A stretch of 64,000 nucleotides of DNA from Thecamonas trahens ATCC 50062 (GCF_000142905.1 NW_013657624.1:103782-167781); one strand, 5' to 3'. Shown: positions 14,783-63,412, counted from the stretch's first letter. Numbers and translations: made by a program. Notes: generated from the sequence alone by a model not told the origin.

Positions 14783-15780
14783 NNNNNNNNNNNNNNNNNN
14801 NNNNNNNNNNNNNNNNNNNNNNNNNNNNNNNNNNNNNNNNNNNNNNNNNNNNNNNNNNNNNNNNNNNNNNNNNNNNNNNNNNNNNNNNNNNNNNNNNNNN
14901 NNNNNNNNNNNNNNNNNNNNNNNNNNNNNNNNNNNNNNNNNNNNNNNNNNNNNNNNNNNNNNNNNNNNNNNNNNNNNNNNNNNNNNNNNNNNNNNNNNNN
15001 NNNNNNNNNNNNNNNNNNNNNNNNNNNNNNNNNNNNNNNNNNNNNNNNNNNNNNNNNNNNNNNNNNNNNNNNNNNNNNNNNNNNNNNNNNNNNNNNNNNN
15101 NNNNNNNNNNNNNNNNNNNNNNNNNNNNNNNNNNNNNNNNNNNNNNNNNNNNNNNNNNNNNNNNNNNNNNNNNNNNNNNNNNNNNNNNNNNNNNNNNNNN
15201 NNNNNNNNNNNNNNNNNNNNNNNNNNNNNNNNNNNNNNNNNNNNNNNNNNNNNNNNNNNNNNNNNNNNNNNNNNNNNNNNNNNNNNNNNNNNNNNNNNNN
15301 NNNNNNNNNNNNNNNNNNNNNNNNNNNNNNNNNNNNNNNNNNNNNNNNNNNNNNNNNNNNNNNNNNNNNNNNNNNNNNNNNNNNNNNNNNNNNNNNNNNN
15401 NNNNNNNNNNNNNNNNNNNNNNNNNNNNNNNNNNNNNNNNNNNNNNNNNNNNNNNNNNNNNNNNNNNNNNNNNNNNNNNNNNNNNNNNNNNNNNNNNNNN
15501 NNNNNNNNNNNNNNNNNNNNNNNNNNNNNNNNNNNNNNNNNNNNNNNNNNNNNNNNNNNNNNNNNNNNNNNNNNNNNNNNNNNNNNNNNNNNNNNNNNNN
15601 NNNNNNNNNNNNNNNNNNNNNNNNNNNNNNNNNNNNNNNNNNNNNNNNNNNNNNNNNNNNNNNNNNNNNNNNNNNNNNNNNNNNNNNNNNNNNNNNNNNN
15701 NNNNNNNNNNNNNNNNNNNNNNNNNNNNNNNNNNNNNNNNNNNNNNNNNNNNNNNNNNNNNNNNNNNNNNNNNNNNNNNN

Positions 15781-15940
15781 GATGACCATGGATCATGGTG
15801 ATGATCATGGTGATAGTGATGGTGGTAGTGATGGTGATGACCATGGATCATGGTGATGATCATGGTGGTAGTGATGGTGGTAGTGATGGTGATGACCATG
15901 GATCATGGTGATGATCATGGTGATAGTGATGGTGATCACC
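15781..15940. repeat. 55-bp tandem repeat (~2.8 copies) abutting the gap
   Basis: Unit gatgaccatggatcatggtgatgatcatggtg(a/g)tagtgatggtggtagtgatggt starts at 15781, 15836 and 15891. Confidence 0.9.
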
Positions 15941-16021
15941 GTGATCGTCATGCCCACCATGATCATGTAGACTACACTCTCTACGCATACTCACGCCATC
16001 GCTCCGCCGCAACCCGCACAG

Positions 16022-31424: not shown

Positions 31425-31564
31425 TAAATAAATATTGAATATATTCCACATGTGAGTGTTTTTTTTTATATTTTTGTATTGCAGTCTCTCGGCCGAACAT
31501 CGGCTTCGATCTGGCGTTATCACGGTCATGGGAAGTTACTCGCATTTAGCTCTGAACGCAAATT
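31425..31564. repeat. Segment A of tandem duplication (second copy at 35895-36033)
   Basis: taaataaatattgaat...tctgaacgcaaatt is near-identical in both places. Confidence 0.95.
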
Positions 31565-31693
31565 GGTCCCACCCGGAGGGTGGAGTACTCTGGCGCCGGA
31601 GATCGTCGGGACTGTGATGGTTGATGCTGCAGGTACGGTATTAGGTTGCGGTTGTGAGCACGCGCGGCGTGTGACACTGATCGGAGGCTGTGA

Positions 31694-31739
31694 CGAGGTC
31701 TCATCCGTGCGCAACAAGTTGCGCACGGATGAGACCTCG
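31694..31739. repeat. Perfect 22-bp inverted repeat with 2-nt loop
   Basis: cgaggtctcatccgtgcgcaac-aa-gttgcgcacggatgagacctcg. Confidence 0.95.
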
Positions 31740-31827
31740 GCGGGGGCCTACGGCCGCCCGCTGCATCCCGAGTCACGCGGTCTTTCCCCCCAGGTATAGG
31801 TTGCGAGTTCATTGATGCTGGATCTCT

Positions 31828-34800
31828 CTACTGGGTGAGTGGCGGGGCGACGTCGTTGGCTGTGGTGCGCTGCAACTCGCGTTTGAGGTTGTCAGGCAAC
31901 TTGAGGCGGTTGAGATAGTTGAATGTGGGCGACTGGAAGAAGATGAGGCCACTGCTGGTTCGTGCTCTGGACATGGCGACGTAGAGAGCCTGAGCAGAGA
32001 GAGTCGCGTGGGGTGAGTTGGTCTTCTCGGCAAAGGCGGGGATGATGGCGACGGAGAGGCTAGTGCCTTGGACCTTGTGGACGGTGGAGGCAAAAGCGGC
32101 GACAATGGGCAGTTGGCGAAGGGAGAAGTTGATCTTGGTTGGGGCATGTGCGGTTCTGTTGGCTGAGGGGACGGTGAGCCGGCATCCAGAAGCGGCGCGG
32201 GGCACGACAGCGACGACGGACGTGGGGAAGGTGTCGGGGACGCCTGGTAGGTGGGAGGTGCGGCCACGGAGGGACGGAACGTCGACGTAGACCACAGCAG
32301 GAAGGGTGTTGGGGATGCGTACGACCGAGTTGGGGACGGAGCGAGAGAGGATCTTGTGTACGAATGTGACGTTGTCAGGGAAGACGACGCCGACGACGAT
32401 ACCAGTTGTGCCGTTGCAGATGGCAGCGGAGGTGGCGATGTTGTCGATGAACATGACGGGAGTTCCGATGGCGAGCGGGACACGCATGTCGTAGTAGCAA
32501 GTGGCGCTTGAGCCGGGAAGGCGAAGGAGAAGGTCGCGGGTTGAGTCGCGAGGTGGGGAGCGAGCGATGGAGATGACGGCTTCAACCATGATGGGCGGCG
32601 GGGCTTCGGCAGCGTGTGCAGCTGCGGCGATGCGAGCGTACACTGTTGTCGTCGCCAGGAACACGATCGTTCGCTGGATCAATACGCGTTCCGAATAGGT
32701 CAAGCCAGAGAGCTGATCAGGAACCGGACCAAGCCACAGGCCGTTGGCGATGGCCAAGCGGGGGGGTGGTGGCGGCTGGTCTGTGTTTTGGCTGGCACGC
32801 GATGGCTCGGAGAGCAGCGATGTGAAGCAGAAGCGGCAGCACTGGAGGACAAAGTCCGGCGTCCCTCCGTTTGACCTATACACATGTGGCATGAAGACGT
32901 CGCTGTCCGCGTCCTCACGCTGGGGTTGGGCGCGCCTGAGGCCGGCTGGGTCGAGGAGGACCTTGGACAGGTAGGGACAGACGTCGGCAATGGAGTAGTG
33001 ATTGACCAAACTAGCTGGCAGCTGGGCAGCAGTGGGCACTGTGAGCTTGCGGACCATCTGGTACATGACAAGACCACATTTGGGACCCTTCCGGACTGAA
33101 CGGGGCGGTCTGCGTGACCAGCATGGCGTGCGGTCTGGGCGCTCGACAAAGGCCGGCGGAGGGTTGGCGAGAGAGATGAGCTCGACGTCGGACGCTGCGA
33201 CCGAGCGCGAGCAGACGGCACACGCAACGCTGTCGGTGGCGTCCGTGATGGCCTGCACCGCACTGTTGACTAGGTCTTGCTCGTCCTCTCTTGAGAGCGC
33301 GTCGGGGAAGGCCGAGGCCGGGGAGTTGGGCGGGCAAGGGGCCCGGGTGTGGTGGACACTGTCCAGGCCGAGCTTGGCAAAGCACTCACCAAGCATGGCG
33401 ACCGCGTCGCCATGCAGGTCGTTCCACCATGCGTCGTGCAGGCCCACCGCGACCACCTGATCAAGGGTGCGTGTGTCCACAGCAGGATTGGCGCTTAAGT
33501 GCTCGGCACGCAACTGGGCCTCTTGGTCATCTAGCCAGCGCCGCGTGGCGAGGTCGAGACCTGCCTGCTCCTGGCGGCGCTGGAGAGCCATCATCGTACG
33601 GACACGGACCCGCTCCTGTATGTCCTCAATAACGGCAGCAAACACGGCCTCGAGCGTGGTTTCGGGCTCGATGTCGCTCGCATCAGCGGCGCATTCGATG
33701 GCGGCGGTGCTTGCTGCGCTCGCGCTACTTGCCGCGGTTGCGGTGGTCTCGGCCCTTGTCGCACCAGGCGCAGGAGCAACAACAATCTCGCCTGGTCGCG
33801 GGGCCCTGGTTTGCTGCGCAAGTCCTGGCCCTTGTTGCGGTTGAGTCCTTGGACGACCACGACGATCACGACGACGCCGACTCTTTGTGATGCCGCGGCC
33901 GATGACCTCATCCCGGATGCGAGTGGCCGCCATCGTCGGCCATGCTGCAGGCGCTGGTAACGACGCCGGACCGGTCCGGCTGTCCCGAGGTGGTTGGGGC
34001 GCGGTGCGCGCCGGGTTGGGGGTGCGAGCAGGTGCGGCACGAGGCGGTGCAAGTTGGGTGGCTCCGGTGGACGCCGGCAGGACATCTGCCGCAGGATCGG
34101 GCGGGGCAGTGCCGGCGACATCCATGGGGGTCAAGCCTTCGTTGGTTGTTGCCTGCGACGACGGGACCAGGGTCATCGGTGATGGGCACGCACGGTTGCT
34201 GTCGTCGTCGTCGTCGGAATAGTCGTCCGAGGAGTCGCGCGGTACCTCTATCGGAGACAGCAGATAGTCGTTGCCGTCGAGTAGGCATTTCTCTCGGAAT
34301 GCCGGGTAGAGGAGATGAAGCCGAAGACGGTCCATGTCGGGTCGTTCAGGGTGCCACTCGGGCCACCAGGGCACCGATCCACGCTGGGTCAGTCTTGGGA
34401 TATCATCTTGTGTTGGTTCGGCTGCCATGACCCGGGATACGTACTCGTCATCGTCGAAGCTGTTGCCGAGGGGTACCTCTTTGACGAACTCGATCTTGAG
34501 GCGCAGTTGCGCGAAGAGGCGCCCCTTTGCCGACCTTTTCCGCTCGCGCTCGACACGTTTGCGGGCAGCGGCCCTGGCGGCCTTGTCTGTGTGAGCCTTG
34601 TCCCTGGCGGCCTTGTCTGTGTGAGCCTTGTCCCTGGCCCGCTGCGCGGCCTTCTTAGCTGCTTGTGCCTTTTTGCTGGTTGTCCACTCCCCCGCTTTAG
34701 CCAGGGCCTTGGCGGCTTTCTTGGCAAGACGGGAGGCCAATGTTTTCATCTTCCTGGCGTTCCTGACTGTTATGGTCGGGTCGGTGCTGTTGAGCGCGTC

Positions 34801-35199
34801 GTCGATAACGCGGGCGCCAGTTTTCAGGTCTTCGAGGTTGCGATTTTGCTTTGCAAGTTGTCCTGCAAGCCTTCGTGACAGACGAATGGCCGAGAAGTCG
34901 TTCAGGGCGGCAGCCGTCGCCGCGAGCCTCTGCATGGCCAGGGCGTAGGAGTTGCGGGCGGATTCCAGGTGGGCGTTGGCTCTGCGAGCGTTTTCTCTTG
35001 CACGGTGCCTCGCCCGCGCCGCAGCCTGTGAGGACGCGTGTGTACGGCCCTGGGATGGCGTGTTTTCGAGATGCTTCGACTTCTTGTCCGGGGGTGGGGG
35101 TTGTTCGCAGCCGCCGTCGTCATCACGGGGTCGCTTGCGTGAGCTTTGACCTTGTCTTGGACGTGCCGAGGAGCTTGTGGACGACCTGTTCTTGTCCAT
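31828..35199 (-). CDS. Truncated RepHel-like protein (CxxC/DUF6570 region joined to PIF1 helicase C-terminus)
   Basis: CAVC...CRFC...LAIANGLWLGPVPDQLSGLTYSERVLI, then LAIGTPVMFIDNI..ICNGTTG, RQLPIVAAFASTVHKVQGTSL, LYVAMSRARTSSGL. No HUH motif or Walker A visible. Confidence 0.85.
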   Translation of the reverse strand: MDKNRSSTSSSARPRQGQSSRKRPRDDDGGCEQPPPPDKKSKHLENTPSQGRTHASSQAAARARHRARENARRANAHLESARNSYALAMQRLAATAAALNDFSAIRLSRRLAGQLAKQNRNLEDLKTGARVIDDALNSTDPTITVRNARKMKTLASRLAKKAAKALAKAGEWTTSKKAQAAKKAAQRARDKAHTDKAARDKAHTDKAARAAARKRVERERKRSAKGRLFAQLRLKIEFVKEVPLGNSFDDDEYVSRVMAAEPTQDDIPRLTQRGSVPWWPEWHPERPDMDRLRLHLLYPAFREKCLLDGNDYLLSPIEVPRDSSDDYSDDDDDSNRACPSPMTLVPSSQATTNEGLTPMDVAGTAPPDPAADVLPASTGATQLAPPRAAPARTPNPARTAPQPPRDSRTGPASLPAPAAWPTMAATRIRDEVIGRGITKSRRRRDRRGRPRTQPQQGPGLAQQTRAPRPGEIVVAPAPGATRAETTATAASSASAASTAAIECAADASDIEPETTLEAVFAAVIEDIQERVRVRTMMALQRRQEQAGLDLATRRWLDDQEAQLRAEHLSANPAVDTRTLDQVVAVGLHDAWWNDLHGDAVAMLGECFAKLGLDSVHHTRAPCPPNSPASAFPDALSREDEQDLVNSAVQAITDATDSVACAVCSRSVAASDVELISLANPPPAFVERPDRTPCWSRRPPRSVRKGPKCGLVMYQMVRKLTVPTAAQLPASLVNHYSIADVCPYLSKVLLDPAGLRRAQPQREDADSDVFMPHVYRSNGGTPDFVLQCCRFCFTSLLSEPSRASQNTDQPPPPPRLAIANGLWLGPVPDQLSGLTYSERVLIQRTIVFLATTTVYARIAAAAHAAEAPPPIMVEAVISIARSPPRDSTRDLLLRLPGSSATCYYDMRVPLAIGTPVMFIDNIATSAAICNGTTGIVVGVVFPDNVTFVHKILSRSVPNSVVRIPNTLPAVVYVDVPSLRGRTSHLPGVPDTFPTSVVAVVPRAASGCRLTVPSANRTAHAPTKINFSLRQLPIVAAFASTVHKVQGTSLSVAIIPAFAEKTNSPHATLSAQALYVAMSRARTSSGLIFFQSPTFNYLNRLKLPDNLKRELQRTTANDVAPPLTQ

Positions 35200-35506
35200 A
35201 TGTGTGTGTGCTTGTGTGTATGTGTGTGTGCATGTGTGTGGAGATCGGTGAAGGTCCTAACGAACGGCACCTGCGTTTGTTCGCTCGCAGTTGTGGGCGG
35301 GAGTGCTCGCGTGACTGTCGGCGGCTGTTGGGCAGTCCAAAAAAGGTCGTAGTTTGGGGGGGTGAACGTGTGCTGGAGGGAGTGAAACCCATAAATGCTG
35401 GGGCGGCGACGCGAGCATTTAGTCTCCCACGTTTTGTAGCCATTTTGGGCGAAAGTGTGTGACGTCACAAAAGGGACGGCTGGTTAAACTCTAGCTGGCG
35501 CCAGAG

Positions 35507-35875
35507 AATTTATGTCCCGGCGGCACTGGAGACATACACACGCTACGCGTGCCCCAGAGCGGGATCAAGCTTGAAAGCGATGCGATACAAGCGCATGGCC
35601 TCGGCCATGTCGCCTGCATCCTCAGCATTGCCTGCGGCATTGAAAAGATCGAGCGCTCGCCGCTTGTCGGGATCGCGAACAGCGCTTGAGCCAGCGACGC
35701 GGGCGTACATGACATCAGTCCGCAGGATGTACTTGCGGCCGGCTTCCGGTCCGAGCTGCTCACCCTCGTGCATGATGTGGTGGTTAAAGATGATGGCGCA
35801 ACCAGACGTGGGCGAAAGTGTGCAGGTACACAGCCTCATCGGGTGCACGGTAGATGTGGCGCTCCTCGTCGCGGA
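35507..35875 (-). pseudogene. Duplicated 3' fragment of the 2OG-Fe(II) oxygenase gene (segment B')
   Basis: Near-identical to 36030-36397 with a 1-bp insertion (gtgtgcagg vs gtgtgagg); lacks the 5' part of the gene. Confidence 0.92.
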
Positions 35876-36065
35876 TGGAATGGGCCGTGTGCACTAAATA
35901 AATATTGAATATATTCCACATGTGAGTTGTTTTTTTATATTTTTGTATTGCAGTCTCTCGGCCGAACATCGGCTTCGATCTGGCGTTGTCACGGTCATGG
36001 GAAGTTACTCGCATTTAGCTCTGAACGCAAATTTATGTCCCGGCGGCACTGGAGACATACACACG

Positions 36066-37064
36066 CTACGCGTGCCCCAGAGCGGGATCAAGCTTGAAAG
36101 CGATGCGATACAAGCGCATGGCCTCGGCCATGTCGCCTGCATCCTCAGCATTGCCTGCGGCATTGAAAAGATCGAGCGCTCGCCGCTTGTCGGGATCGCG
36201 AACAGCGCTTGAGCCAGCGACGCGGGCGTACATGACATCAGTCCGCAGGATGTACTTGCGGCCGGCTTCCGGTCCGAGCTGCTCACCCTCGTGCATGATG
36301 TGGTGGTTAAAGATGATGGCGCAACCAGACGTGGGCGAAAGTGTGAGGTACACAGCCTCATCGGGTGCACGGTAGATGTGGCGCTCCTCGTCGCGGAAGA
36401 GCGGTAGGCTGTCGTCGAGAAAGTTGGTGGCGCCGCCGTCGGCCACGGCGTTGAGGTACAGCATGCAGGTCTTGAACGAGGCCGTCTCGGCGTCGACCAC
36501 AAACTGGCCGTCGTAGTGCGGCGCAAAGTGGGCGCCGGGTTCGTATCTGCACAGTCGAAACAGTGGATTGAGCCCGGTCGGCCGCCATGTCCCATCCTGA
36601 CCGATGGCGCCGCCTCGCCCGAGCGACGGCCGCGGCGGCTCGCCTGGGCCCGGGACGACGATCTCCGGCTCGAGGTGCGGCGCGAGACGGGCGTACAGCT
36701 CGTCCGCCAGCCGTGGCGAGTAGAATCGCAGCCGCGTGTTCGAGCGGATGTCCTTGCGGCGGGTCGGCTCCTCGGCGATGCCGACGGCCTCGCCCCACGC
36801 CATCAGCGCCTCGGCCTCCTCGGCCGAGATGAGCGGGCTGAGCGTCATGCCGCGGACCAGATCCGCGCCTCCCGCCTCCGCATCCACACCTTCTTCTTCG
36901 TCTCCATCTCCGCCTCCGCGAAGCGCCAGAACAGTGCGGACGCACTCGGCCGGCGGCGGCGCGGCGAGCGACGGCAGAGGCGGCCCGCCCGGTGTCTCGG
37001 GGTCGTATGCTCCAGCGGGCGTCTCGGCCTCCTGCACCAGCGTGCGCTGCAGCTCTGGGTCCAT
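36066..37064 (-). CDS. 2OG-Fe(II) oxygenase, prolyl-4-hydroxylase-like
   Basis: FRLCRYEPGAHFAPHYDG (HxD), MLYLN, GGATNF, HEG, KYILRTDVMY; short TPR-like tail. Confidence 0.9.
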   Translation of the reverse strand: MDPELQRTLVQEAETPAGAYDPETPGGPPLPSLAAPPPAECVRTVLALRGGGDGDEEEGVDAEAGGADLVRGMTLSPLISAEEAEALMAWGEAVGIAEEPTRRKDIRSNTRLRFYSPRLADELYARLAPHLEPEIVVPGPGEPPRPSLGRGGAIGQDGTWRPTGLNPLFRLCRYEPGAHFAPHYDGQFVVDAETASFKTCMLYLNAVADGGATNFLDDSLPLFRDEERHIYRAPDEAVYLTLSPTSGCAIIFNHHIMHEGEQLGPEAGRKYILRTDVMYARVAGSSAVRDPDKRRALDLFNAAGNAEDAGDMAEAMRLYRIAFKLDPALGHA

Positions 37065-37256
37065 AGCACAGTCGCGGACTCGTGGGCGGTTCGGCTCGCA
37101 GTTCTGGCGGTGGAGAGGCTGCGAGGCGTGCGGCGTGTTCCAGCTGGGTTTTCTGCTGGCGGTGCCCTGCCGGCCTTCCATTGTGGTCGAGAAGCACACG
37201 ATGCAGGGCGCGGGGAGTTTATGACGGCAGCGCCAGGCCAGGTCGTGTGCGGCGCA

Positions 37257-38574
37257 CTACTCCGAGTCGTCCATGGCAGTGAGGATCTGCCAGTCATCGG
37301 AGCCCTGGATCTCTTCGGCAAAGTGGTTGGTGTAGAGCTTGGGGTCGTACGTGCCCTCCTCGGGGTGGAACCGCAGTGTCTCGTTGTAGATGAGGGCGCG
37401 GATGACGTCAATGGGGAGGTCGTCGGCGAGCTCAAAGTCAAAGGTGGGGAACTCGGCGTCGGCGACGATTTCTGACGCCGGCTTGCGGATCTTGGCAAAG
37501 AACGGATGGGCAAGGGCGTCAGCGGCAGAGATGCGGACACGCCAGTCGACAGCGAGCATGCGCTCGAGCAGGTCGATGAGCTCGGGCTCGGCCTCGGGAA
37601 AGTGCTCGGCGAGCGGGCGGGGGGCCGGGTACTCGTAGTCGTGGACGTAGGCCTGGGCCTTCGGGTAGCGGTACATGGCGACCAGGTCCTCGGGCGGCGG
37701 GCCAAAGGTGTCGAGGATGAGGTTGAGCTGGTGTGAGTCAGAGATGCCGCGGAGCCACGGCTTGCCGCAGAGAAACTCGGTGAGGATCATGCCGACCGAC
37801 CACATGTCGATCGACTCGTTGTAGTTGAGTGGGTCAAGGAAGAGCTCGGGCGCCCGGTAGTAGCGGGTCACCACGACAGCCGCGTATGAGATGGCCATGT
37901 GCTGCCGCGCGAGGCCAAAGTCACAGACCTTAAGGAAGCACTTGGCGTTTGAGAGGCAGTTGGCCGGCTTGAGATCACGGTGCATGCAGTTGGCCGAGTG
38001 CAGGTACTTGAGTGCCTTGACCAGCTGGTAAATATAGTACCGGTAGTGGTCCTGCGTCAGCGGCTGGCCCGACGAAATGATAAAGTGCAGATCGACCTTC
38101 ATGAGGTCGACCACAAGATAGATCTCGTTGAACGTCGTCTGCTCCGTCTTGTCGACCACCATGATGTCGTGCACCTCCAGAATGTTCGGATGCTTGAGGA
38201 ACGAGTGAATCTTGAGCTCGCGGAGCGACCGCTTGGCCGACAGCGGATGCGCAAACACTGTGCATCCCCACCGTATTCAGTGCCCCCCCCCCCCATCGCA
38301 ACTCGCACAGCGTGAGTCTCACGGCCATGAGCACACCCTTCCTCTTCCTCTCCTCTCCTTCTCACCCTCTCTCCCACGTACGGTCAAGCAGCTTCTTGAT
38401 CGCCACCTTCTTTCCCGTCACCAGATCCAGGCCTTCGGCGACAACGCCGTACGCGCCCTTGCCGAGGATCTTGTCGACCCGATAGCGGGCGTCGACCGTC
38501 ATTTCCACCGTCGTGCGTTTGTACGTCAGATGAAACGTCGTCTTTCCCGACGGGATCGACTGCGAGATGTCCAT
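37257..38574 (-). CDS. MAP kinase-family Ser/Thr kinase, atypical activation loop; intron 38258-38381
   Basis: GKGAYGVV, VAIKK, AKRSLRELK, HRDLKPAN, DFGLAR, TRYYRAPE, IDMWSVG; GTACGT...CAG intron splices in frame. Confidence 0.92.
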
Positions 38575-60732: not shown

Positions 60733-61574
60733 NNNNNNNNNNNNNNNNNNNNNNNNNNNNNNNNNNNNNNNNNNNNNNNNNNNNNNNNNNNNNNNNNNNN
60801 NNNNNNNNNNNNNNNNNNNNNNNNNNNNNNNNNNNNNNNNNNNNNNNNNNNNNNNNNNNNNNNNNNNNNNNNNNNNNNNNNNNNNNNNNNNNNNNNNNNN
60901 NNNNNNNNNNNNNNNNNNNNNNNNNNNNNNNNNNNNNNNNNNNNNNNNNNNNNNNNNNNNNNNNNNNNNNNNNNNNNNNNNNNNNNNNNNNNNNNNNNNN
61001 NNNNNNNNNNNNNNNNNNNNNNNNNNNNNNNNNNNNNNNNNNNNNNNNNNNNNNNNNNNNNNNNNNNNNNNNNNNNNNNNNNNNNNNNNNNNNNNNNNNN
61101 NNNNNNNNNNNNNNNNNNNNNNNNNNNNNNNNNNNNNNNNNNNNNNNNNNNNNNNNNNNNNNNNNNNNNNNNNNNNNNNNNNNNNNNNNNNNNNNNNNNN
61201 NNNNNNNNNNNNNNNNNNNNNNNNNNNNNNNNNNNNNNNNNNNNNNNNNNNNNNNNNNNNNNNNNNNNNNNNNNNNNNNNNNNNNNNNNNNNNNNNNNNN
61301 NNNNNNNNNNNNNNNNNNNNNNNNNNNNNNNNNNNNNNNNNNNNNNNNNNNNNNNNNNNNNNNNNNNNNNNNNNNNNNNNNNNNNNNNNNNNNNNNNNNN
61401 NNNNNNNNNNNNNNNNNNNNNNNNNNNNNNNNNNNNNNNNNNNNNNNNNNNNNNNNNNNNNNNNNNNNNNNNNNNNNNNNNNNNNNNNNNNNNNNNNNNN
61501 NNNNNNNNNNNNNNNNNNNNNNNNNNNNNNNNNNNNNNNNNNNNNNNNNNNNNNNNNNNNNNNNNNNNNNNCCA

Positions 61575-61659
61575 TGTGTACACAGACATATGTATATATA
61601 TACATATATATATGTATGTATGGTTAGTGTGTATGTGCATGTACGTGTGTGTATGTATG

Positions 61660-61700
<41 letters not shown>
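61575..61700. repeat. (TA)/(TG)n microsatellite
   Basis: tatata and tgtgtg runs beside the gap. Confidence 0.9.
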
Positions 61701-61703
<3 letters not shown>

Positions 61704-61888
61704 ACCGTGTGTTCAAGGGGAGGGGGGTCAAGTGGTGGCTGGCGCTGGTGGCTGGTGGTGGTGATCACTCGGACGAAGCGACAGACGGATATGCATGACG
61801 AGCCCACCACCCCCCCCTCCCCTCCTTCCCCCCTCGTCCCACACCACACCACACCACACAAACTCCAACCCACACTGTCTTCCCCACC

Positions 61889-63412
61889 ATGGCCACCAGT
61901 CCACCAGTCTCCCCCATCCAAGTCAGTGAGTATACCCCGTTCGGAGAGAGTGGCAACCACGAGGACGACAACGAGGTCGACCGCCACCACCATGGTGACC
62001 ACCATCACCTCGACGACCTCGATGACGAGGGGAAGAACGAGATTGACTATACAGCATCGCCAGGAGGCCCTGCTTGGGATGGCGCAGAGTCGGACGGTGG
62101 CTTGTCAGTCGACTCCGGATCGAGCTCCGGATCGGGCTCGGGCTCGGGATCGGGATCAGGCTCGTCGGCCTTTGAGGTTGATCCGGCAGTGGTGTACTCG
62201 GCAGAGGTGATGGCGGCGTTTGGGGCCTTGTCTGAGGAGCAGCGGCTGCGGTCGCTGGCAGAGTACCGGCATACCAATAATGTACTGATGGAGAGGCTCG
62301 AACGCGCCCATCAGCTGCTGGAGATCGAGGCTGAGTTCAAGGCCGTCGCCCATGAGGAGCTTAATGCGCTCCACGCCGAGAATCGCGGGCTGGAGGCCCA
62401 GCTGAGCGAGGCTAACACCATGATCGAGGCGCTGCAGGCCGAGCTCGATGCCGCACTTGCGTCCAAGGCCGCCATCACCAAGGAGAAGCTCCGGGTGTCG
62501 ACCCAGCTGAGCGAAGCCAACCTGTCGATGGCGGCGCTGGCAGATGGCGGCGACGACGGCGGAGTCAGCGATGCGGCCGAGGTAGTGAGCAGCGTGGGAA
62601 GCGCGTCACCAAAGGCAGAGGCAGCGGCTGGTGTGCTCAGTGCAGCAAGCAGCGGGCCGTCGATGATGGACAAGTACCTCAGCGCCAAGGAAGAGACGCT
62701 CGAGCTCAAGGCGCAGATCAAGGCGCTGGGCGGCGAAGTGGAGGCGGCGCGGGCGGCGTGCGCGCGAGCGGAGAGCGAGCGCGAAACTGCGCTGGAGGAC
62801 AACGCCTGGCTCCGGTTCAACGCGCACTGCATTCCGTACCGCAAGCGAATGCGCAGCCTGGGGCTCGAGGCGCAGGCGCTGTATGCCCAGGCCAAGGCGC
62901 GGCAGCTGGCGCCCGAGGGCTGGGGCGAGTTTGTGTATGGGCATGTACATGCCGGGCTTGAGTCTGGCAAGATCCGCGACTCGGAGTCTGACGACGGGAG
63001 CAGCGGCGGCGGGCGGGCGCGGCGGGTTGACTCGCCGCTGTACGAAACAGTGAGCTCGGACGGGGCGGACGAGTCGGTGCCTGTGGGAGCGTCGGCAGGC
63101 GGAACGCCGATCCGGTATGGCGGGCGGGCGGATCTGCTCGCTGGCGGCGGGAACAATAGCTCGATGGAGGGCCACATTTCGAACGCGTGGGTCCCGGACA
63201 AGCTGGTGACGCGGTGTACGCACTGCACGGCCAAGTTCACGCTCTTCCGCCGCAAGCACCACTGCCGGCACTGCCTTCAGATCTACTGCTCGGCGTGCTC
63301 ATCCAACTTTATGACCATCCCTGCGCTCAACTTTCTGGAGCCTGTGCGAGTCTGCGACGTGTGCGTCTTTCTTATCACGCCGACGATGCACGGCCTGCCG
63401 CCGGACGCCTGA
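61889..63412 (+). CDS. Coiled-coil plus C-terminal FYVE-domain protein
   Basis: WVPD..CTHC..FTLFRRKHHCRHCLQIYCSACS..VRVCDVC. Confidence 0.9.
   Translation: MATSPPVSPIQVSEYTPFGESGNHEDDNEVDRHHHGDHHHLDDLDDEGKNEIDYTASPGGPAWDGAESDGGLSVDSGSSSGSGSGSGSGSGSSAFEVDPAVVYSAEVMAAFGALSEEQRLRSLAEYRHTNNVLMERLERAHQLLEIEAEFKAVAHEELNALHAENRGLEAQLSEANTMIEALQAELDAALASKAAITKEKLRVSTQLSEANLSMAALADGGDDGGVSDAAEVVSSVGSASPKAEAAAGVLSAASSGPSMMDKYLSAKEETLELKAQIKALGGEVEAARAACARAESERETALEDNAWLRFNAHCIPYRKRMRSLGLEAQALYAQAKARQLAPEGWGEFVYGHVHAGLESGKIRDSESDDGSSGGGRARRVDSPLYETVSSDGADESVPVGASAGGTPIRYGGRADLLAGGGNNSSMEGHISNAWVPDKLVTRCTHCTAKFTLFRRKHHCRHCLQIYCSACSSNFMTIPALNFLEPVRVCDVCVFLITPTMHGLPPDA

Follow-up and report, generated by a model that had tools for sequence, protein, structure and literature searches.

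The window analyzed here, a 64,000-nucleotide (nt) stretch of the Thecamonas trahens ATCC 50062 genome (GCF_000142905.1 NW_013657624.1:103782-167781), carries on its minus strand a 3947-nt element (31562-35508; the length includes one ambiguous terminal T). Most of the element is filled by a single open reading frame (ORF) of 1123 codons (31828-35199, minus strand), the remnant of a RepHel gene, and a tandem duplication of ~0.5 kb adjoins it, with one unit filled by the element and the other empty. We read the element as a non-autonomous, internally deleted copy of a low-copy rolling-circle transposon of the Helitron2 type (HLE2, endonuclease-less), and place the probability of this reading at roughly 85%. 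An initial annotation, made from the sequence alone, had proposed transposon ends at these two positions in what it took to be a protist genome. Both quoted ends were found in the sequence there, and the ORF corresponds to AMSG_10318 (XP_013753788.1) of T. trahens ATCC 50062, an apusomonad and thus indeed a protist. Further copies, used below to define the ends, lie on contigs C53 and C58 of the same genome and on three metagenome contigs: L037 (ERZ27274872, k141_72824) and L038 (ERZ505273, NODE_2442) from the European Nucleotide Archive (ENA), and L044 (Ga0208059_1001435) from the Joint Genome Institute (JGI).

The extent of the element was defined from the empty site and from the sequence that is shared, or not shared, at independent junctions. 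Self-comparison of the region gave the order flank A, element, flank B, a 19-nt filler (35876-35894), flank A', and flank B', where A'B' (35895-36397) is the empty copy of the target. Positions 35895-36033 match 31425-31564 at 97.9%, positions 36030-36397 match 35507-35875 at 99.7%, and the two matches overlap by four bases at the empty site (36030-36033). The empty site reads CATAAATTTGCG and the filled site CATAAATT|CTCTGG...GGGACC|AATTTGCG, a comparison that places the insertion to within a 4-base ambiguity. Copies with different flanks have in common only the sequence from TTCTCTGG to GACCAAT. Because an empty site adjoins the element and independent copies share only this sequence, the boundaries are exact.

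The junctions of the various copies follow a simple target rule. All 5' junctions read ...T|TCTCTGG, preceded by the contexts AAAT, CAGT, and AAGT, and at each 3' junction GACCAAT is followed by T or C (GACCAAT|T or GACCAAT|C). The empty sites read AAAT^TTGC, CAGT^CGGC, AAGT^CTGC, GTGT^TTGG, and GTGT^CGAA. The base at position -1 is T at five of five readable junctions compared with empty sites, and that at position +1 is T or C at six of six. No target-site duplication was found at the five junctions compared with empty sites, and the variable-sequence duplications that would have spoken against a Helitron2-type element are likewise missing there. The initial annotation had described the site as compatible with insertion into T^T without duplication of the target; the lack of duplication and the T at -1 agree with this.

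A second reading offered by the initial annotation, a 4-bp AATT duplication, fared less well. This reading would make the element a cut-and-paste terminal inverted repeat (TIR) transposon, and in the window AATT does stand on both sides of CTCTGG...GGGACC and once in the empty site. The fixed-length duplication expected of TIR transposons is seen in the window only, however: elsewhere the four bases differ between the two sides (AGTT versus AATT, AGTT versus AATC), and GGGACC is followed by AAT at every 3' end, irrespective of the flank. In addition, the right repeat is set 26 nt inward of the end, and the family encodes a Rep and a helicase, not a DDE transposase. The other junctions thus reject the AATT duplication, and a TIR transposon is exceedingly improbable.

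On the minus strand, the element starts from 35508 as (T)TCTCTGGCGCCAGCTAGAG, position 35508 onward reading TTCTCTGGCGCCAGCTAGAG, and runs to 31562 as CCGGCGCCAGAG-TACT-CCACCC-TCC-GGGTGG-GACCAAT. The 5' subterminal inverted repeat, CTCTGGCGCC (35497-35506, minus strand), is invariant in the window copy, L037, and L038; its core, CTGGCGCCAG, is a palindrome by itself, and the repeat can pair with the following AGCTAGAG as a 7-bp hairpin. The 3' subterminal repeat, GGCGCCAGAG (31588-31597, minus strand), lies 26 nt inside the 3' end, so that the CTCTGGCGCC 10-mer is found at 35497-35506 on the minus strand and at 31588-31597 on the plus strand, with an extended match of 12/14. Both inverted repeats, set back by 1-2 nt from the 5' end and by 26 nt from the 3' end, show no variation among the copies. 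Because the 10-mer occurs three times on both strands of the 64-kb window (0.68 expected), its placement by chance in the correct orientation within ~60 nt of the 3' end is unlikely (roughly 1e-3 to 1e-2).

Folding identified a stem-loop, CCACCC-TCC-GGGTGG (31569-31583, minus strand), with a 6-bp stem and a 3-nt loop; it lies 4 nt beyond the right repeat, with 7 nt between it and the 3' end. It is identical in the C53 copy, L037, L038, and L044 and hence conserved wherever the 3' end is complete (five copies). The terminal heptamer GACCAAT (31562-31568, minus strand) is likewise common to five of five copies with an intact 3' end; the base after it is T, T, C, or C, L044 repeating the C53 flank. 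The folding energy of the terminal hairpins is unexceptional (z -1.1 at the 3' end, z -1.5 at the 5' end), and their weight comes from position and conservation, not from energy. Thus, the 5' inverted repeat, the subterminal 3' repeat, and the hairpin after it, all noted in the initial annotation, are present and conserved among copies.

The encoded protein shows what was lost from this copy. From its N-terminus, which is unique and of low complexity, the ORF passes through a Cys-rich region, the beginning of a DUF6570 domain, and a deletion junction to a helicase C-terminus, and it terminates directly after the helicase, 266 nt before the element end. It equals AMSG_10318 except for one repeat unit of 10 amino acids (aa): a 30-bp tandem repeat within the ORF (34572-34631) is present here as two units and in AMSG_10318 as one, the sole difference. 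The DUF6570 match (aa 813-856; 32632-32763, minus strand) covers profile positions 5-48 of 133 (E 4.8e-9, 37.2 bits, cut-off 24.3) and is cut off by an internal deletion whose approximate junction, at 32637 on the minus strand, was located by comparison with the C53 copy. From this point toward the 3' end, the window copy aligns collinearly (97%) with the end of the C53 copy that encodes the helicase. What has been lost is the remainder of DUF6570, the entire Rep, and helicase motifs I-III; a domain search of the helicase C-terminal part detected Pif1 2B (aa 909-937) and UvrD_C_2 (aa 1035-1085; together 31945-32475, minus strand). Because Rep and the ATPase core are lost, the copy is non-autonomous.

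The "uncharacterized protein" AMSG_10318 of RefSeq is, on this reading of the element, transposon debris. Its 1123 codons read through an in-frame deletion without interruption, and the same ORF is intact in L037, features that could also be expected of a Helitron-derived gene domesticated by the host. However, seven of the 11 nucleotide differences between the window and L037 ORFs are non-synonymous, and this comparison of 11 differences gave no signal of purifying selection on the ORF. The copies occupy different loci and have transposon ends, as expected of mobile sequence rather than a fixed gene; neither the catalytic motifs of Rep nor the ATPase motifs remain; and long open frames are easily kept at 63-65% G+C. 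Domestication is accordingly a very improbable account, and debris of a mobile element the preferred one.

A whole-genome search (28.7 Mb, 131 contigs) revealed only three copies of the family, each with a different internal deletion; the 3' end is complete in two of them and truncated in the third, and two 5' ends were found. No short non-autonomous copies beyond these three were detected in a genome search with both termini allowing <=3 mismatches. The C53 copy (7.5 kb) is 97% identical to the window copy over its last 1.08 kb, which includes the complete 3' end, and it also retains element 5' nt 5-42. It holds the single genome match to Helitron_like_N (E 7e-15), and the window copy the single genome match to DUF6570. 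The C53 copy further encodes the motifs LHAHILIW and YYAAKYAFK (tyrosine) and a PIF1 domain distinct from the sole cellular PIF1 (contig C6). The family thus encodes RepHel, an HUH/two-tyrosine Rep with a PIF1-like helicase, as seen in this copy. The C53 Rep is itself broken, with its HUH motif split between ...IETQGRGCL and ...LHAHILIW by a ~1.1-kb insert. This insert carries an antisense coiled-coil ORF, with a long PTDAAA-type repeat after it (region L031:7100-8980, plus strand).

The C58 copy (L032:1033-4964) starts at element nt 68, ends within the 3' hairpin, and is located between perfect 68-bp direct repeats; it looks like a captured fragment that served as filler at a tandem-duplication or break-repair junction, not like a clean transposition. 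The deletions differ in each case: in the window copy, the start of DUF6570 abuts the late helicase; in the C58 copy, an earlier point is joined to a helicase point ~630 nt further upstream; and in the C53 copy, the 5' end is joined to mid-Rep. From these three different deletions, we infer that no copy in the genome is autonomous and that the parent element exceeded 10 kb. The window copy is at present stranded, because the assembly holds no working partner for it. Separately, an isolated 49-nt match (92%) to element nt 89-137 on contig C87 (L033:1091-1139) may be a remnant.

Assignment to a class draws on published descriptions of rolling-circle transposons. A DUF6570 domain upstream of Rep was reported by the HELIANO study to be specific to the Helitron2/Helentron (HLE2) clade, whose members are known from 19 phyla (PMC11417382). 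Canonical HLE2 elements possess short inverted repeats at their termini, a stem-loop after the right repeat, and insertion at T-T (PMC11417382; similarly PMC4067079, PMC5148889). In non-autonomous elements of the Helentron type, the subterminal repeats are palindromic and lie 2-4 nt from the 5' end, and a palindrome of 5-10 bp is located 8-35 nt from the 3' end (PMC4067079). Helitron2 lacks an endonuclease, its inverted repeats are asymmetric, and each end has a hairpin; its target is summarized in a figure as "TTTT" and then "T" or "C" (PMC5148889). The element agrees with every published structural point of HLE2, though its repeat is short (10 bp).

Protein comparisons point in the same direction. 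In a HMMER search of the C53 helicase against 1.8 billion representatives, the 25 longest top matches included Helitron_like_N in 23 cases and DUF6570 in 17, with no apurinic/apyrimidinic (AP) endonuclease domain in any. By BLAST, the helicase scored 140-169 bits against RepHel proteins and 55 bits against the host PIF1. In the PDB, cellular PIF1s reached ~33-38 bits and Helraiser, the canonical Helitron transposase, 30.8 bits; the scores of DUF6570-bearing RepHel proteins in phmmer were 100-140 bits. The initial annotation had stated that grouping of the helicase with cellular PIF1 or Helitron1 would refute its proposal, and the far higher scores to RepHel proteins run the other way. Searched against solved structures, the C53 Rep part gave low-complexity noise only and no match to Helraiser.

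These results also bear on whether the element might be a canonical Helitron (HLE1/Helitron1) inserted at A^T. It shares with Helraiser/Helibat (PDB 7LCC) an HUH-Y2 Rep fused to a PIF1-like helicase, the lack of a target duplication, and a hairpin near the 3' end; the window target AAATTT permits A^T, and the start is readable as TC. Unlike HLE1, whose ends are 5'-TC...CTRR-3', it shows GACCAAT as the 3' end of all copies, with no CTRR, and the 5' TC exists in one register only. Nor is the A^T target consistent: when T is taken as the 3' base, A precedes it at one site and G at the other four, which then read G^T. The element further departs from HLE1 in its subterminal inverted repeats, in a DUF6570 reported to be HLE2-specific, and in a helicase that finds Helraiser only at the low score given above. 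With the CTRR end absent and G^T at four sites, the canonical Helitron was rejected and must be considered highly unlikely.

Within HLE2, the initial annotation had left Helentron and Helitron2 together. The strict mark of a Helentron, an AP endonuclease C-terminal to the helicase, is missing: no Exo_endo_phos match was obtained in the window ORF or in the scanned C53 ORFs. The element is thus Helitron2 rather than Helentron. Like Helentrons and HINE/DINE-1 elements (PMC4067079), it shows subterminal inverted repeats that are palindromic and lie 2-4 nt from the 5' end, together with a short palindrome placed ~8-35 nt from the 3' end; the target is of the TT type, and deletion derivatives have the same ends as the coding element. 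Unlike Helentrons, it lacks the endonuclease after the helicase and terminal T runs, and its copy number is very low.

The likeness to Helitron2 of Chlamydomonas reinhardtii and to FoHeli1 and FoHeli2 of Fusarium oxysporum (PMC5148889) covers RepHel coding without an AP endonuclease and a Cys-rich N-terminal region with DUF6570. In both, each end carries palindromes or hairpins, and the inverted repeats are placed asymmetrically, one right at the 5' end and the other tens of nucleotides in from the 3' end. As with FoHeli1 and FoHeli2, insertion occurs after T without target duplication, and the 5' end is ambiguous between TC and TTC. The Thecamonas element differs from these systems in an inverted repeat of only 10 bp, a 3' end of GACCAAT rather than ATTTT, and an inferred parent of >10 kb. 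Its protein is only ~30% identical to any relative found, its host is an apusomonad, and no intact autonomous copy was seen.

Evidence for recent movement comes from outside the reference genome. The 90% cluster of the ORF includes two proteins from ENA metagenome assemblies; their contigs, L037 and L038, contain the 3947-nt deletion form in full and without gaps, at 99.1% and 99.5% identity, in flanks unrelated to those of the window. L044, found by an exact-match scan with the element 3' end, is 99.7% identical over the 3' 3.3 kb on the contig and then enters the flank of the C53 locus; this combination of a window-type body with a C53 flank reflects either an assembly-graph chimera or a different occupant of the locus in another strain. 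Further copies with these termini, whose absence would have counted against the initial annotation, therefore exist both in the genome and on three metagenome contigs, the latter derived from near-identical Thecamonas strains. In the T. trahens genome, the flanks of L037 and L038 match four sites, on contigs C59, C75, C33, and C38 (92%, 99%, 91%, and 99%, respectively), and at none of these is the element present. Because contigs reaching four empty sites carry the exact deletion form throughout, a form of which the genome has one copy, this form was very probably mobilized after the deletion arose, and recently (<=1% divergence).

Several observations weigh against the Helitron2 reading or against the account of its movement. 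The perfect inverted repeat of 10 bp is shorter than the usual 12-16 nt and falls below the HELIANO search floor of 11 nt. The register is ambiguous by one T, as T^[TC...AAT]Y or R^[TTC...CAA]T: the ends can be read as TCTCTGG...GACCAAT inserted at T^T/C or as TTCTCTGG...GACCAA inserted at R^T, and the data equally fit an element TTC...CAA placed before an invariant T. FoHeli1 and FoHeli2 show the same one-T ambiguity (PMC5148889). Nearest non-self proteins are only 31-35% identical by phmmer and 28-30% by BLASTP, and placement in HLE2, though it has good indirect support, is based on a marker domain, the architecture of the nearest relatives, and the end structure. As for movement, each ENA contig has a 5' flank and a 3' flank that match different contigs of the genome, the two 5' flanks match the genome at only 91-92%, and the ENA contigs and L044 may be short-read assembly-graph chimeras. 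Because the contigs are possibly chimeric graph paths, the metagenome junctions were used singly and unpaired, and the assignment of body to flank is likewise tentative. Finally, a helper is absent from the assembly, and no intact family member was found among the representatives searched.

The tandem arrangement of filled and empty target admits a different origin, in which two alleles of a heterozygous insertion were stitched together by the assembler; the boundaries would then remain valid and the duplication would be unreal. The two units differ at only 4 positions in ~510 bp, a level compatible with allelic divergence. Against such an artefact stand the 19-nt filler between the units, typical of real tandem duplications, and the C58 copy, which also lies between direct repeats. 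We therefore regard the artefact as unlikely and the duplication as probably real. As a separate observation, the duplication copies the 3' end of a 2-oxoglutarate (2OG)-Fe(II) oxygenase gene (36066-37199, minus strand), and the element is located ~35 nt downstream of the duplicated stop codon.

How the element would have moved can be sketched by analogy with Helraiser and FoHeli. RepHel supplied in trans would nick one strand at the 5' end via its HUH/two-tyrosine nuclease, and its PIF1-like helicase would displace the strand in the 5'-to-3' direction. The 3' inverted repeat and stem-loop may act as the stop signal, upon which the ends would join to form a circle; this circle would then be pasted beside a T (T^T or T^C) without duplication of the target. 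The window copy can move only with help, because Rep and helicase motifs I-III are missing. Two of the three genome copies lie at duplication junctions, the window copy in the 0.5-kb unit and the C58 copy between the 68-bp repeats. Conceivably, although we consider it improbable, integration or repair of the element is mechanistically tied to local tandem duplication of the target, as a break-repair-linked route beside rolling-circle pasting. If true, this would represent a non-canonical route for Helitron2 DNA in a family still mobile in wild Thecamonas.

Apusomonads are a lineage near the root of animals and fungi. To our knowledge, their mobile elements are almost undescribed. No paper combining Thecamonas and Helitron was found in the literature searched, and the family appears to be a new and divergent one in a known transposon class, judged against that literature. 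It provides a cleanly bounded Helitron2-type family in an apusomonad, with empty sites and between-strain insertion differences that signify recent movement. It also supports DUF6570 and the layout of inverted repeat, stem-loop, and T target as reliable HLE2 markers far outside fungi and animals, while knowledge of how such elements work is unchanged by the finding.

Additional features were recorded within and around the element. Its 3' untranslated part contains a perfect 46-nt palindrome (31694-31739, minus strand) with 22-bp arms and a 2-nt spacer; present in all copies, it folds at -30.2 kcal/mol (z -11.2) and could serve as a terminator or be bound by a protein. On contig C67 (L043:2795-5179, minus strand; ~35794-38178 of the contig), an ORF of 794 aa without a Pfam match shares a module of ~180 aa with aa 143-304 of the element ORF (35% identity, E 1e-24), including the motifs LRLKIE, RVMAAEPT, SVPWWPEWHP, and LYPAF. 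This common module is either a host gene fragment captured in the N-terminus of the transposon or part of a second mobile family. Elsewhere in the window, positions 15001-16000 and 61001-62000 form sharp A+T-rich islands (10% and 24% G+C, respectively) against a background of ~65% G+C.

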